DNA of 64,000 nt. It comes from Octopus sinensis (taxonomy: Eukaryota). This document shows positions 6,310-45,456 of this stretch, in pieces. The stretch covers positions 31,136,464 through 31,200,463 of the forward strand of contig NC_043011.1 in NCBI RefSeq assembly GCF_006345805.1, in the 5' to 3' direction. Below the pieces are notes generated by a model that worked only from the letters and a program-made list of their open reading frames with translations, was not told the origin of the DNA and searched no databases. A program made the position numbers and the translations under genes. Position 1 is the stretch's first letter. Each line of letters begins with the position of its first letter.

Positions 6310-6338
6310 TTAATGTTGTTTTCTTCTGAATGAACAAC
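6310..6338 (-). CDS. RPS27: RPS27 copy A exon 4
   Basis: tttctacag|GT TGT TCA TTC AGA AGA AAA CAA CAT TAA = (G)CSFRRKQH*. Confidence 0.92.
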
Positions 6339-42700: not shown

Positions 42701-45456
42701 TAATTTACATAAAATTTTAGCTTAATGTAATTGCTGAGTAGAGTGTTTTAGCTTTGCTTTATTTGACCTGTTAATTTTTTTTTTAATCAGTGTATTAAGC
42801 TGTTACTAGTGTGGGGTTTGTATTAAGACTTTGGTCTCTTAACAAAGGAAATAATAGTGAGGAAGATTTAGCTGTTTTCTGACTTGCCACTCTACAATAT
42901 TATTTCCTTAGTGTGTCATCATTTTTATAGCTACCACATCATTACTGTATGGTTGAGAAGCAGTATTCTTTTACTGGGTGTAGTTCCTACCATCAACCCT
43001 TGTTTCTCAAATGAGATGTTTTTAAAAAATTTCTCTGGTTTTTATACACGATGAAACTAATTGTGGGAAATTTAATTTACTAGAGATGTTAAAGTTTATG
43101 ATAAGAACTGATTTGAAGTGACAGTTTTAAATTTAGTTAAGGTATAATGCAGTCTCTGGTCATTTAGTAGGACAGTAACTTTGAGTAAGATCTGAATCAA
43201 CCCATGATGATTTGTCCAGCTCATTCATGCTGGCTTTTAAAAGTGGATGTAAAATTATTATATGATTAAGGTGGTGAGCTGGAAGAATCATTAGCACACT
43301 GGTCAAAATACTTAGTGGCATTTCATCTATCTTTACGTTCTGGGTTCAAGTTCTACCGAGGTCATCTTTGCCTTTCATCCTTTTGGGGTTGATGAAATAA
43401 GTACCAGTCGAACACATGGTTCGATGTAATCAACTAGCCCTCCCCTCCAAATTTCAGGCCTTGTGCCTGTAGTAGAAAGAATTATTAGGGCGAGCTGGCA
43501 GAAATGTTAGCATGCCGGGCGAAATGCTTAGCGGTATTTCGTCTGCCGTTACGTTCTCAGTTCAAATTCCACCAAGGTCGACTTTGCCTTTCATTCTTTT
43601 CGGGGTCGATTAAATAAGTACCAGTCATGCACTGGGATTGAATATAATCAACTTAATCCGTTTGTCTGTCCTTGGTTGTCCCCTCTGTGTGTAGCCCCTT
43701 GTGGGCAGTAAAGAAAGGATTATTATTATTATCATGGTGAGGATGATGATGACAATGACACACTACTCTAGTTAGTTTGTAACTATTTATGATCTATGCA
43801 TAGAGGTAGTGCCATGACTAATGAGGGAAATTCAAGGTGTGGTTTTTGCTAGTGGAAAACTATAATAATTTTGATATCCTTGTAACCATATTTCTGTTGA
43901 AACATCTGATCTTTGATTCAACTAATTTTGAAAATAGTGAAGAATTTAGTAAAATAATTTCGTGGTTATTAAGCTGGTGTTTGACACATAAATTGATATG
44001 GAATTTTGATGGAAAGTTTTTAATTTAGATCACTTTAACCCTTTTCATACCAAGACCACATGTGGTTCTAGATCACAAAATATTTCTTTGAAGTGATCTC
44101 AATTTCCTAGGAGTAGGGGTGGCTGTGTGGTAAGTAGCTTGCTTACGAACTACATGGTTCCGGGTTCAGTCCCACTGCGTGGCACCTTGGGCAAGTGTCT
44201 TCTACTATAGCCCTGGGCCAACCAAAGCCTTGAGTGGATTTGGTCGACGGAAACTGAAAGAAGCCCGTCGTATATATGTATGTATATATATATATATATA
44301 TATATGTATGTATGTATATATATATATATATATATGTATGTGTGTGTCTGTGTTTGTTCCCCCAACATCGCTTGACAACCGATGCTGGTGTGTTTATGTC
44401 CCTGTAACTTAGCAGTTCAGCAAAAGAGACTGATTGAATAAGTACTAGGCTAACAAAGAATAAATCCTGGGGTCAATGTGCACGTCTAAAAACGGTGCTC
44501 CAGCATGGCCACAGTCAGATGGCTGAAACAAATGAAAGAGTAAATTAAAACTTTCCCTTATAATTTCATGGTACTTTGTTTCAAATAACAAAATTTTATT
44601 AAATTCTTTGTTGCTTTCAAAATTAATGAAACAAAAAGCAGTATGTATCTACAAGAATATGGTAATGAAAAGGTTAAAAGTAGAAGTTTGTCTCATTGAA
44701 CTAGGGACAGTCTCAGGTGTTTGGGGATCAAAACAGTTAAGAATTTCTTGTGTAAATATTCAAGTTTACTGAGCTGGATATGACAACTTATAGTTGCTTA
44801 TAAATTAGTGTTTTGTAGTTTATGCTCAGCCGTCTGCCAGCCAAGTCATCAAATGAAAATCAACTCATGGGAAAATTAATTAAGAGTCATCATCATCGTT
44901 TAATGTCTGCTTTCCATGCTAGCATGGGTTGGACGATTTGACTGAGGACTGGCGAACCAGGCTCCAATCTCATCTGGCAGAGTTTCTGCAGCTGGATGCC
45001 CTTTCTAACAATCAAGTGTCTTTCAAAAATCATGGTCAAAAGCCTAATGGATGACTTTGATGCCATGAGTGAACATAATCATCATCATTATTTAGCATGC
45101 GTTTACCATGCTAGCAGGGGTTGTATAGTTTGACAGGAGCTGGAGGGCTGCCTCAGGCTCCATTGTCTGTTCCGGCATAGTTTCTACAGCTGGATGCCCC
45201 TCCAAATACCAACCACTTTACAGTGTACTGGGTACTTTTACATGGCACCAGTACCAGTGCTTTTTACGTGGCACTAGTATTTGTTTTTCGGTGGCCATAC
45301 CACAATATATGTGCTTTTGCAAAAGCTTAAGTACAATTTGTTTTCGCTAATTTTTTCTTAAGACTATTTGCCATTGAATTACATGCTTTATATTGTGAGT
45401 AAAAGCAAGTTTTCTTTGTTTCTACAGGTTGCTCATTCAGAAGGAAACAGCACTGA
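27764..45456 (+). CDS. RPS27: 40S ribosomal protein S27 (eS27), copy B; spliced CDS 27764-27769, 40051-40159, 42401-42511, 45428-45456
   Basis: Exons of 6+109+111+29=255 nt give a protein identical to copy A; GT-AG introns of 12281, 2241 and 2916 nt. Confidence 0.93.
29470..29790 (-). mobile_element. RTE LINE 3' fragment
   Basis: Minus strand [34 protein letters not shown], an RTE C-terminal motif (RL.W.GHV.R). Confidence 0.75.
30230..31000 (-). mobile_element. Old LINE reverse transcriptase remnant (CR1/L2-like)
   Basis: Frameshifted LYINDL...YA(DD)TL-like motif on the minus strand; many stops. Confidence 0.5.
31420..34330 (-). mobile_element. Old RTE LINE remnant split by a SINE and a mariner insertion
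   Basis: Decayed QFGF...AFV.M.KAF RT motif near 32000 on the minus strand; further LINE-like sequence at 33480-34330. Confidence 0.5.
32562..33409. mobile_element. Fold-back mariner derivative made of two 5' ends in inverted orientation
   Basis: TA-flanked TIRs of about 50 bp. Left arm begins the transposase ORF on + ([19 protein letters not shown]); right part encodes [14 protein letters not shown]...[10 protein letters not shown]...[21 protein letters not shown] on -. Confidence 0.88.
34389..34603. mobile_element. piggyBac-type MITE
   Basis: ttaa|cccctttgttatc...ggtaacgaaaggg|ttaa. Confidence 0.75.
35098..35337. mobile_element. hAT-type MITE
   Basis: TIRs cagtggttccca / gagaactactg; 8-bp TSD atctagtt / atttagtt. 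Confidence 0.75.
37148..37450 (+). mobile_element. tRNA-derived SINE (CORE/Meta-like)
   Basis: Same family as 24443. Confidence 0.7.
38340..38900 (-). mobile_element. RTE-tailed SINE with RTE C-terminal segment
   Basis: Family motif plus [12 protein letters not shown]-like RTE terminal coding remnant. Further copies at 39550-39790 and 40685-40920. Confidence 0.7.
40051..40159 (+). CDS. RPS27: RPS27 copy B exon 2
   Basis: tcattgcag|CTC GCT AAA GAT...TGC CCA G|gtaag. Confidence 0.96.
42401..42511 (+). CDS. RPS27: RPS27 copy B exon 3
   Basis: ttttccag|GC TGT TAT AAA...ACA GAA G|gtaag. Confidence 0.96.
43268..43720 (+). mobile_element. Two tandem tRNA-derived SINE copies
   Basis: Repeated ggtgagctggaagaatcattagc / ggcgagctggcagaaatgttagc heads. 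Confidence 0.7.
44115..44544 (+). mobile_element. tRNA-derived SINE
   Basis: Same family as 21358. Confidence 0.8.
45428..45456 (+). CDS. RPS27: RPS27 copy B exon 4
   Basis: tttctacag|GT TGC TCA TTC AGA AGG AAA CAG CAC TGA. Confidence 0.93.

Follow-up and report, generated by a model that had tools for sequence, protein, structure and literature searches.

Duplicated ribosomal protein genes that evolve in concert are known from fungi (Mullis et al., 2020; PMC6993855; that paper also cites Evangelisti & Conant, 2010) and from plants (PMC4679983). In animals, there is usually one functional gene per ribosomal protein family (PMC6993855). The vertebrate genes Rps27 and Rps27l originated by whole-genome duplication, are located on different chromosomes, differ at three residues in exon 2 and fall into separate orthologous clades (PMC10313321), while each of nine sampled invertebrates had at most one Rps27 gene (Xu et al., 2023, eLife, PMC10313321). 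Gene conversion between inverted duplicates has been studied in the arms of primate Y palindromes (PMC4772468), and the theory has been reviewed (PMC3924837); a crossover between inverted copies inverts the spacer and does not delete it. Our literature search found no report of octopus RPS27 paralogs or of gene conversion in cephalopod ribosomal protein genes, the cephalopod papers that use ‘RPS27’ as a reference gene being concerned with Rps27a (ubiquitin fusion) and irrelevant here. We describe a pair of eS27 (RPS27) genes in Octopus sinensis which, with a probability that we place at roughly 0.85, is an ancient inverted duplicate with exons that have been overwritten by short-tract conversion from genomic DNA, in addition to strong purifying selection on the protein.

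The window, i.e., the whole stretch of 64,000 nucleotides of O. sinensis DNA that was analysed, carries two complete four-exon eS27 genes oriented head to head, with copy A on the minus strand and copy B on the plus strand (Table 1). The first-pass annotation had placed such a pair 14.5 kb apart, and the coordinates, the intron sizes and the exon 1 junction, which is ATGCCG|gttag in both genes, were all as it had given them. A recount also returned the same 14 silent differences in 255 coding nucleotides, distributed as one in exon 2, eight in exon 3 and five in exon 4, the exon 4 differences extending to the stop codon, which is TAA in A and TGA in B. Both translations are the same 84-aa eS27. 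All donors are GT and all acceptors are AG. The 84-aa product, protein P0121, has 93-95% identity with vertebrate eS27 by homology search, and PF01667 (Ribosomal_S27e) is found in its relatives and in the called genes. Both products contain C37-P-G-C40 and C56-V-G-C59 (CxxC...CxxC), and we take these four residues to be the zinc ribbon cysteines. Given that A and B are each interrupted by three introns, identically placed, and that their frames are intact, a processed retrocopy or pseudogene was ruled out. The count of two paralogs was correct for A and B, but missed a third, copy C, which is located outside the window at ~41 kb downstream of B and carries H84Y; the Octopus eS27 family has three members.

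Table 1. Features of the eS27 locus in the window (Octopus sinensis CM016873.1:31,136,464-31,200,463); positions are those of the window.
Feature	Position	Strand	Remarks
eS27 (RPS27) copy A, start to stop codon	6310..13271	-	matches the O. sinensis gene in L005 at 100% identity
Copy A CDS exons 1-4	13266-13271, 12533-12641, 9535-9645, 6310-6338	-	introns 1/2/3 of 624/2887/3196 nt
Copy A type I promoter and 5' UTR	13292..13372	-	homologous to upstream of Octopus C and Argonauta P, not B
Copy A poly(A) signal AATAAA	6271..6276	-	34 nt past stop codon
Copy A intron 2, last 100 nt, putative co-converted flank	9646..9745	-	aligns with B 42301-42400
Intergenic spacer between A and B start codons	13272..27763	.	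14,492 nt
eS27 (RPS27) copy B, start to stop codon	27764..45456	+	matches the O. sinensis gene in L004 at 100% identity
Copy B CDS exons 1-4	27764-27769, 40051-40159, 42401-42511, 45428-45456	+	introns 1/2/3 of 12281/2241/2916 nt
Copy B type II upstream region	27674..27744	+	TTTCTCTCTCTTC...ACGTACTAC...CCAATTTCATC...CTTGGTT
Copy B intron 2, last 100 nt, putative partner flank	42301..42400	+	aligns with A 9646..9745
Copy B poly(A) signals, two AATAAA	45586..45617	+	130 and 156 nt past stop codon

The spacer between the two start codons has no ORF of at least 130 aa; microsatellites and dispersed repeats occur in it, along with a foldback palindrome of ~750 bp (14742-15497). A weak tblastn match to exon 2 within it (17255-17350) was indistinguishable from chance at the nucleotide level (z about 0) and was rejected as a relic or pseudo-exon. 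The counterpart spacer in O. bimaculoides is only ~2 kb, but includes an assembly gap.

We compared three species from two genera, O. sinensis, O. bimaculoides and Argonauta hians, and the pair is thereby shown for octopods (Octopus, Argonauta) rather than for all cephalopods. Ten plausible protein variants, looked up exactly as a route to squid and cuttlefish eS27 genes, returned no decapodiform protein. Both loci, when sought in the further genomes, were found in O. bimaculoides and in A. hians, where the copies are referred to as P and M. The gene order is the same in all three species (131/132-aa gene, A or P, B or M, dUTPase) and the head-to-head orientation of the pair is kept. Intron 1 is short in A (624 nt) and P (about 537 nt), and long in B (8-12 kb) and M (about 4 kb). 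An uncollapsed haplotig or a mis-join would make the pair an artefact of assembly. Uncollapsed haplotypes occur in assemblies such as these, and the Argonauta cluster is found on two contigs about 95% identical to each other; however, three independent assemblies each have the A/B pair in one orientation and between the same flanks, O. vulgaris has it annotated twice, the introns, promoters and UTRs of A are unrelated to those of B, and the window has no N runs. An artefact is thus extremely improbable, and the first-pass annotation was right to set a haplotig aside.

Comparison of the regions outside the coding sequence points to a pairing of the copies by position, A with P and B with M, that is clear for both 3' UTRs and for the A promoter, and weak for the B promoter. 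In alignments of the 150 nt upstream, A matched P (z = 12.7) and C (z = 13.5) and did not match B (z = –0.6). The A promoter has the order GAATACGA...TATTACTATATATA and, after ~16 nt, a predicted oligopyrimidine start element CTTCCTTTCTG (about 13291-13301); for B, the predicted oligopyrimidine start is at about 27674-27686. The type II region of B, which is unrelated to the A/C/P promoter, aligns with the region upstream of Argonauta M, both lying equally far from their start codons (z = 3.9, 0/300 shuffles). This likeness is modest, as B scored equally high against the non-orthologous Argonauta P (z = 4.1, 1/300), a score that is probably due to low complexity. The short 3' UTR of A is homologous to those of Argonauta P (z = 10.2) and Octopus C (z = 6.8), and the 3' UTR of B (45457 to about 45570) is homologous to that of Argonauta M (z = 13.8). 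Within each genome, the two 3' UTR types are unrelated in local alignment, both for A and B (z = 1.3), as had been noted earlier by eye, and for P and M (z = –0.1). Since the same flanked pair is found in both genera, and since UTRs and promoter pair by position, the duplication predates the Octopus-Argonauta split. The proposal of an old duplication is well founded in this respect.

The coding exons, by comparison, group by lineage. In quartets of Octopus and Argonauta sequences, 16-18 informative sites supported grouping by lineage, three supported grouping by orthology and none supported the third arrangement. The dS between paralogs was 0.28 for A-B and 0.30 for P-M, compared to 0.60-0.95 between the genera, values that have wide errors because the short coding sequence offers only ~55 synonymous sites. 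With polarity taken from other molluscs, K16R is derived and common to Octopus A, B and C, and G58A is derived and common to Argonauta P and M. Grouping by lineage, and a paralog dS below that between the genera, would also be seen had inverted duplications occurred independently in the Octopus and Argonauta lineages, without gene conversion, to give pairs younger than the split. Such a history is highly improbable, in that it leaves unexplained why the orientation and both flanking genes match across the genera, why B resembles M and A resembles P in 3' UTR and promoter, with no likeness within a genome, why the length class of intron 1 follows position, and why the A and B introns cannot be aligned when a divergence of 0.28 would align fully.

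A second reading accepts the ancient duplication and attributes the likeness of the coding sequences to parallel codon selection or mutation bias, together with protein constraint, with no exchange between the copies. Ribosomal protein genes are highly expressed and codon bias is frequent in such genes, and in 10 of the 14 synonymous differences specific to a lineage, Octopus has A/T where Argonauta has G/C, so that a compositional shift could mimic part of the concerted synonymous signal. However, relative to an intron and flank divergence of 0.071-0.091 between O. sinensis and O. bimaculoides, the dS values of the orthologs were 0.076, 0.076 and 0.139. Because orthologs diverge at synonymous sites about as fast as in their introns (about 0.08), there is no detectable synonymous constraint. 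Codon bias also does not account for the derived replacements common to the paralogs of each lineage, for noncoding intron flanks that are lineage-specific and common to paralogs, or for variants shared within a species, chiefly in exon 2. Taking this evidence as a whole, we consider the codon-based explanation very unlikely. The strong selection on exons claimed in the first-pass annotation applies to the protein, with 2 nonsynonymous versus about 24 synonymous changes, but not detectably to the synonymous sites. Among the Octopus copies and species, the proteins depart from one another only by H84Y in C and by N29D in O. bimaculoides B.

The introns of A and B have diverged much further than the exons. 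A collinear alignment of A to B covered 7.8% of gene A, comprising the exons with the sequence directly next to them and a single dispersed repeat. Non-collinear matches between the introns were rejected as gene homology, as most are copies of dispersed SINE-like repeats. In simulations using the same blastn settings, ~100% of the gene was recovered at divergences up to 0.5 and ~0-4% at divergences of at least 0.7, and thus the failure of the introns to align places their divergence above 0.5-0.7 substitutions per site. Set against a dS of 0.28, unalignable introns are at odds with a simple recent duplication, in which the introns would be as similar as the synonymous sites. The earlier observation that A and B introns do not align beyond ~20 nt from the splice sites mostly holds, but the end of intron 2 is an exception: its last ~100 nt align with 72 matches and 23 mismatches (z = 5.6), and the JC distance of 0.29 is that of exon dS. 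Similarity ends abruptly, with no A-B alignment in the next 100 nt upstream in intron 2. Flanks next to the exons are also specific to each lineage and common to its paralogs. In Argonauta, the flanks of exon 3 are identical between P and M at 20/20 and 19/20 positions, compared to 40-65% against Octopus; in Octopus, A and B agree at 18/20 positions (90%) just upstream of exon 2, compared to 45-50% against the Argonauta orthologs. An Rfam scan for intronic snoRNAs, which might have accounted for conserved stretches of intron, found none, and its sole match was a degenerate U4 copy in intron 3 of B.

These flanks bear on the donor of the conversion. In fungi, a cDNA donor has been proposed from the same argument of dS versus intron divergence (PMC6993855), and if conversion at the octopus locus were mediated by cDNA from abundant mRNA, the exons alone would be homogenised. 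The steep drop of identity near the exon borders is as expected for such a donor, but the tracts take in intron sequence at the Argonauta exon 3 flanks and upstream of Octopus exon 2, and the 100 nt upstream of exon 3 have diverged to the same degree as the exon itself. In addition, the exons have different histories, whereas a spliced cDNA would tend to convert neighbouring exons jointly and could erase introns. Conversion from cDNA therefore appears very improbable, and since intron flanks of 20-100 nt have been homogenised along with the exons, the donor would have been genomic DNA. Gene conversion, which the first-pass annotation had thought probable, gains support from coding sequences that group by lineage, from a dS far below intron divergence and from lineage-specific flanks shared by paralogs.

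The differing histories of the exons are evident within the genus Octopus. Only one of the sites that differ between A and B is in exon 2, whereas exons 3 and 4 have 13 (Fisher p = 0.004), and the paralog-specific sites in Octopus are confined to exons 3-4, with none in exon 2. Orthologs group within the genus except at exon 2 sites and at site 162 (exon 3); the sites shared within a species are 84, 46 and 67, and 162, all of them in exon 2 except 162. Copy C is a mosaic, with a B-like exon 3 and with exon 4, UTRs and promoter that are A-like. From its sequence, C appears to be an A-type copy that joins in exchanges with A and B.

Under ancient inverted duplication with genomic conversion, a single head-to-head DNA duplication in the ancestor of Octopus and Argonauta would have given rise to A and B. 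Promoters, UTRs and most intron sequence would then have been free to diverge, with two promoter types and two 3' UTR types each being kept across both genera (the B promoter weakly). The coding exons and about 20-100 nt of adjoining intron would have been overwritten repeatedly by short-tract, non-crossover gene conversion from genomic DNA, most recently in exon 2, after the split of O. sinensis and O. bimaculoides, and earlier in exons 3 and 4. Acting in addition to conversion, strong purifying selection on the protein would account for an identical 84-aa product under different regulatory regions.

Conversion could also repair a copy that is unexpressed or dying, so that it looks intact. 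This would most likely be B, which does not have the canonical A/C/P promoter, has a first intron (12 kb) swollen by repeats and has acquired N29D in O. bimaculoides. Conversely, the B-specific substitutions of exons 3 and 4 predate the split of O. sinensis and O. bimaculoides and are all synonymous, N29D being the one exception among the paralog-specific substitutions of B. The B upstream region (weakly) and its 3' UTR are conserved with Argonauta M, B has kept its splice sites, start, stop and poly(A) signals in all three species, and public annotations model B as protein-coding. A silent copy is thus unlikely. Purifying selection and intact signals argue that A and B are functional eS27 genes, and conservation together with the public gene models suggests that both are transcribed and translated. 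The 109-aa ‘isoform X1’ annotated for B in O. bimaculoides was rejected as a conserved alternative N-terminus, as its extra exon is a read-through into intron 1 and the frame of this exon is broken in O. sinensis.

The octopod eS27 set adds a new case, from animals, to a phenomenon already known. Like the fungal and plant ribosomal protein duplicates, the octopus pair has identical or near-identical proteins and coding sequences homogenised by repeated gene conversion, with dS far below intron divergence and with divergent promoters and flanks. Three features of the kind used in PMC6993855 were found here: a duplication older than the split, coding sequences grouped by lineage, and a dS lower than that of the introns. 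The octopus genes differ in being a local head-to-head pair with a linked third copy, whereas the fungal and plant duplicates come from whole-genome duplication or retroposition, and in having co-converted intron flanks, indicative of a genomic DNA donor, in place of the cDNA donor proposed for fungi, a feature that the octopus pair does not share. The primate Y palindromes resemble the octopus pair in that intrachromosomal non-crossover exchange keeps inverted copies alike; however, whole palindrome arms are homogenised, whereas the octopus tracts are very short and are centred on exons of 29-111 nt amid kilobases of unrelated intron. The locus offers a clean, small case in which short tracts over tiny exons were converted from a genomic DNA donor, in contrast to the cDNA mechanism for fungal ribosomal protein genes.

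The vertebrate genes Rps27 and Rps27l share with the octopod genes their membership of the eS27 family, their four exons and their near-identical or interchangeable proteins. Unlike the vertebrate genes, octopod A and B are linked on one chromosome, have exons that evolve in concert and show no N-terminal residue differences, the proteins being identical in O. sinensis. Retention of Rps27 and Rps27l has been attributed to expression and not to protein function, and the octopod copies, with their two promoter types, may be comparable in this respect. Expression divergence of the RPS27/RPS27L kind is plausible, given that two promoter types are conserved (that of A clearly, that of B weakly). 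Since A and B encode one and the same protein, retention through protein function or through ribosomes with specialised isoforms does not apply, and dosage or a partitioning of expression remain as reasons; retention would then depend on dosage or on differing expression from the two promoter types.

These results matter for work on cephalopods in a practical sense, since near-identical copies confound qPCR, the assignment of RNA-seq reads and gene trees for a common housekeeping gene. They also reveal an invertebrate lineage in which two to three eS27 genes have stayed intact from a time before the Octopus-Argonauta split, with products that are identical or one residue apart, while the A- and B-type promoters and UTRs are unrelated yet conserved (the B promoter weakly). 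We tentatively suggest, as a possibility that we rate somewhat below even, that the linked octopod eS27 set is a regulatory duplication in which conversion centred on the exons holds every copy to one protein and expression is partitioned, e.g., between nervous system or germline and general tissues, while the ribosome stays homogeneous. If this is true, the partitioned octopod set would parallel RPS27/RPS27L as an invertebrate counterpart of independent origin, in which protein specialisation is excluded as the cause of retention.

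The two eS27 (RPS27) genes, A and B, were located by tblastn with human eS27 followed by direct reading of the window, which contains zero N. Each gene is complete with four exons, and the exon 1 junction reads ATGCCG/gttag in both. The start codons lie 14,492 nt apart, and introns 1, 2 and 3 measure 624, 2887 and 3196 nt in A and 12281, 2241 and 2916 nt in B. Of the 255 coding nt, 14 distinguish A from B: exon 2 contributes 1, exon 3 contributes 8 and exon 4 contributes 5, among them a change in the stop codon (TAA in A, TGA in B). Both genes yield an identical 84-aa product. 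On re-reading, the exons, introns, spacing, differences and product reported in the first-pass annotation were all correct. The poly(A) signal AATAAA is found 34 nt past the stop codon in A, and at 130 and 156 nt in B. Public annotation names both genes '40S ribosomal protein S27-like' in O. vulgaris, O. sinensis and O. bimaculoides, the O. vulgaris records of the pair being CAI9736089.1 and CAI9736090.1.

Coordinates of features at the eS27 locus and in relatives (window positions unless a locus handle, L001 to L008, is given)
Feature	Position	Strand	Remarks
eS27 A, CDS exons	13266-13271, 12533-12641, 9535-9645, 6310-6338	-	
eS27 B, CDS exons	27764-27769, 40051-40159, 42401-42511, 45428-45456	+	
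131-aa protein gene	within 1-2662, e.g. 794-937	+	synteny marker only
dUTPase gene	50794-55456+; exons near 50803-50907, 50988-51293, 51581-51655, 53303-53398	-	
eS27 C, O. sinensis	L007 10001-18281 = CM016873.1:31,223,005-31,231,285		
eS27 C, O. bimaculoides	L008 10001-16669		
SINE-like repeat, A side	7014-7131, 8002-8109, 8673-8860, 9786-9879	both	
SINE-like repeat, B side	29779-29971, 38346-38520, 39548-39718, 40689-40864, 44873-44993, 45075-45251	both	
U4 snRNA copy, B intron 3	43792-43910	+	50 bits, gathering score 46
Foldback palindrome, A-B spacer	14742-15497		~750 bp; arms 91-94% complementary; 1.5 kb upstream of A
Tandem-repeat arrays, A-B spacer	19589-19864, 22484-22619		8-nt period
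656-aa ORF	55911-57881	+	two FLYWCH zinc fingers, MULE transposase domain
RVT_1 and Exo_endo_phos ORF fragments	59391-60206, 61424-61834	-	LINE-type retrotransposon pieces
Assembly gap, O. bimaculoides	L001 9926-9935		
'Isoform X1' N-terminus, B	L001 10085-10165; window 27852-27931		rejected
Minisatellite, Argonauta M	L003 6546-6953		100-113-nt unit

The head-to-head pair is also present in O. bimaculoides (L001, L006) and in Argonauta hians (L002, L003), where the two genes are designated P and M. In Octopus the order is 131-aa gene, A, B, dUTPase and, ~35-40 kb on, a third eS27 gene (C), then a Sua5/YrdC-domain gene; in Argonauta it is Sua5-domain gene, dUTPase, M, P and a 132-aa gene. The 131-aa gene, convergent with A and without a Pfam match, has one exon whose protein sequence is 89% identical to that of the 132-aa gene adjoining P, and the dUTPase gene, convergent with B, also adjoins M. 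Gene order on both flanks therefore establishes the positional matches A = P and B = M. C is a four-exon gene ~41 kb downstream of B, past dUTPase and outside the window, whose product (P0127) ends in RRKQY, with the replacement H84Y. The Argonauta interval from the Sua5-domain gene to dUTPase is without eS27, so that C is either an Octopus-lineage addition or an Argonauta loss. The Argonauta block lies on two contigs, BAAFZT010000045.1 and BAAFZT010000008.1 (L002/L009 and L003/L010), which are collinear and ~95% identical with kilobase indels, and would be either haplotypes left uncollapsed in the assembly or the product of a large segmental duplication of recent date. In O. bimaculoides the 2-kb A-B spacing is unreliable because an assembly gap lies just before B exon 1. 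For B in that species, the N-terminus of the annotated 109-aa 'isoform X1' is intron 1 read-through, its frame being broken in O. sinensis.

A sensitive blastn comparison of the two genes gave collinear matches at three places only: exon 2 with ~20 nt of flank on either side (151 nt, 94%), exon 3 together with the ~100 nt of intron preceding it (219 nt, 82%) and exon 4 with a short flank; the remaining matches were dispersed repeat copies. Over its final 100 nt, intron 2 aligns between A and B, at 72 matches to 23 mismatches (JC distance 0.29; z = 5.6), and the adjoining 100 nt, farther from exon 3, gave no A/B alignment. The earlier limit of ~20 nt on intron similarity was thus slightly too strict, while the view that the introns are otherwise unrelated stands. 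One short, dispersed SINE-like repeat (65-87% identical) fills the introns of both genes with many copies, which make up nearly all non-collinear A/B similarity. As a control, gene A was evolved in silico and subjected to identical blastn chaining, which at divergences of ≤0.5 substitutions per site recovered ~100% of the gene and at ≥0.7 recovered ~0-4%. The real A-B collinear recovery was 7.8%, comprising the exons, the flanks next to them and one repeat. Orthologous introns and flanks of O. sinensis and O. bimaculoides have diverged by 0.071-0.091, and ortholog dS is 0.076 for A, 0.076 for B and 0.139 for C, which indicates that synonymous sites of an eS27 gene change about as fast as its introns. 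An A-B dS of 0.28 therefore predicts easily alignable introns; as they are unalignable, the exons are far 'younger' than their surrounding introns. B intron 3 also holds a degenerate U4 snRNA copy whose 3' stem-loop is truncated and whose Sm site is altered; it is probably a pseudogene or retro-copy of U4. The O. bimaculoides B intron 3 is only 436 nt, placing this copy in an O. sinensis-lineage insertion.

Outside the exons, the genes pair by position. Local alignments of the 3' UTR gave z = 13.8 for B-M, 10.2 for A-P and 6.8 for A-C, versus 1.3 for A-B and -0.1 for P-M within a genome. Over the 150 nt that precede the start codon, A-P (z = 12.7), A-C (13.5) and C-P (14.3) matched strongly, versus A-B (-0.6) and P-M (-0.1). 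The B-M match (z = 3.9; 0/300 shuffles) is weak evidence taken alone, because the non-orthologous pair B-P scored z = 4.1 (1/300 shuffles). A, C and P have a common layout of GAATACGA...TATTACTATATATA followed by an oligopyrimidine CTTCCTTTC ~20-30 nt before the start codon, a canonical-looking ribosomal protein promoter; B and M have a different common upstream sequence, in which a pyrimidine run lies ~90 nt ahead of the start codon. The first intron is short in A (624 nt), P (~537 nt) and C (956 nt), and long in B (8-12 kb) and M (~4 kb). At the start of M intron 1, exon 1 and its 5' splice site (AACTCCACATCATGCCGGTAGGTAGC) are repeated 4-5 times in a minisatellite.

The coding exons, conversely, group by lineage. 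In quartets of Octopus A and B with Argonauta P and M, 16-18 informative sites join A with B and P with M, 3 follow orthology and 0 the third arrangement. With only ~55 synonymous sites in the coding sequence, dS is 0.28 for A-B and 0.30 for P-M, and 0.60-0.95 for every Octopus-Argonauta comparison. Since other molluscs carry K16 and G58, two replacements are derived: K16R, common to all three Octopus copies, and G58A, common to P and M. Exon-adjacent intron flanks are likewise lineage-specific and common to paralogs within a lineage: for the flanks of Argonauta exon 3, P and M match at 20/20 and 19/20 positions versus 40-65% identity with Octopus, and for the 20 nt preceding exon 2 in Octopus, A and B show 90% identity versus 45-50% with the Argonauta orthologs. 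An AT/GC shift between Octopus and Argonauta could underlie part of the lineage signal at synonymous sites; such a shift cannot account for K16R, G58A or the intron flanks. Non-coding regions grouping by position and exons by lineage are the signature of concerted evolution, and co-converted flanks point to genomic DNA rather than cDNA as the donor. The comparison covers Octopus (two species by sequence, one more by annotation) and Argonauta.

Homogenisation has been episodic, because within Octopus the orthologs group, with 4 (A-A), 5 (B-B) and 7 (C-C) differing sites versus 8-16 between paralogs. Exon 2 is the most recently converted exon: it carries 1 A/B difference, against 13 for exons 3 and 4 together (Fisher p = 0.004), O. 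sinensis A and B have site 84 in common, O. bimaculoides A and C have sites 46 and 67 in common, and exon 2 has no paralog-specific, orthology-informative sites among the Octopus copies. Exons 3 and 4 retain paralog-specific sites older than the split of the two species, the one site there with within-species sharing being 162 (B and C). C is a mosaic, with a B-like exon 3 (2 differences from B, 6 from A) and an A-like exon 4, 3' UTR and promoter.

The six Octopus sequences show ~24 synonymous and 2 nonsynonymous changes (H84Y in C; N29D in O. bimaculoides B), against a neutral expectation of roughly 3.5 nonsynonymous per synonymous change. B-specific substitutions are synonymous throughout except N29D, the gene retains intact splice sites, an intact stop codon and intact poly(A) signals in O. 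sinensis and O. bimaculoides alike, and the B 3' UTR is clearly conserved with M. Each eS27 copy is presumably transcribed.

We propose that an ancient inverted DNA duplication gave rise to the head-to-head pair, and that later short-tract, non-crossover conversion would have been seeded in the conserved exons and reached 20-100 nt into the introns. Conversion would keep the exons alike, and purifying selection would hold the protein unchanged. By general recombination logic, a crossover between A and B, arranged head to head, would only invert the spacer, and one between the directly oriented B and C would delete dUTPase. The spacer also contains two tandem-repeat arrays and a palindrome; because related copies of the latter occur beyond the window start, it probably represents a foldback or MITE-like repeat and not the midpoint of the old inverted duplication. 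An intact ORF inside the dUTPase gene span would encode either a Mutator-like element or a domesticated transposase, and retrotransposon fragments with reverse transcriptase and endonuclease domains lie further along the window.

Concerted evolution of duplicated ribosomal protein genes has been described in fungi, with dS far below intron divergence and a proposed cDNA donor (PMC6993855), and in plants (PMC4679983); according to the fungal study, most animals have one functional gene per ribosomal protein family (PMC6993855). Our literature search found no paper on the octopod eS27 locus, which is a fresh animal case of this known phenomenon and differs from the earlier cases in being a local, linked gene set with co-converted intron flanks. 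Duplication of eS27 is not unique to octopods: the gastropod Littorina saxatilis carries an independent pair on CM074574.1 (L011, L012), 4.7 Mb apart, with an identical 84-aa product and each gene adjoining an Acetyltransf_CG gene. Nine sampled invertebrates have one Rps27 gene apiece, and vertebrate Rps27/Rps27l, of whole-genome duplication origin, encode functionally interchangeable proteins differing at three residues and are kept through subfunctionalised expression (PMC10313321). Since the octopod proteins are identical, dosage or differing expression from the two promoter classes would be the simplest account of why the copies have been retained.
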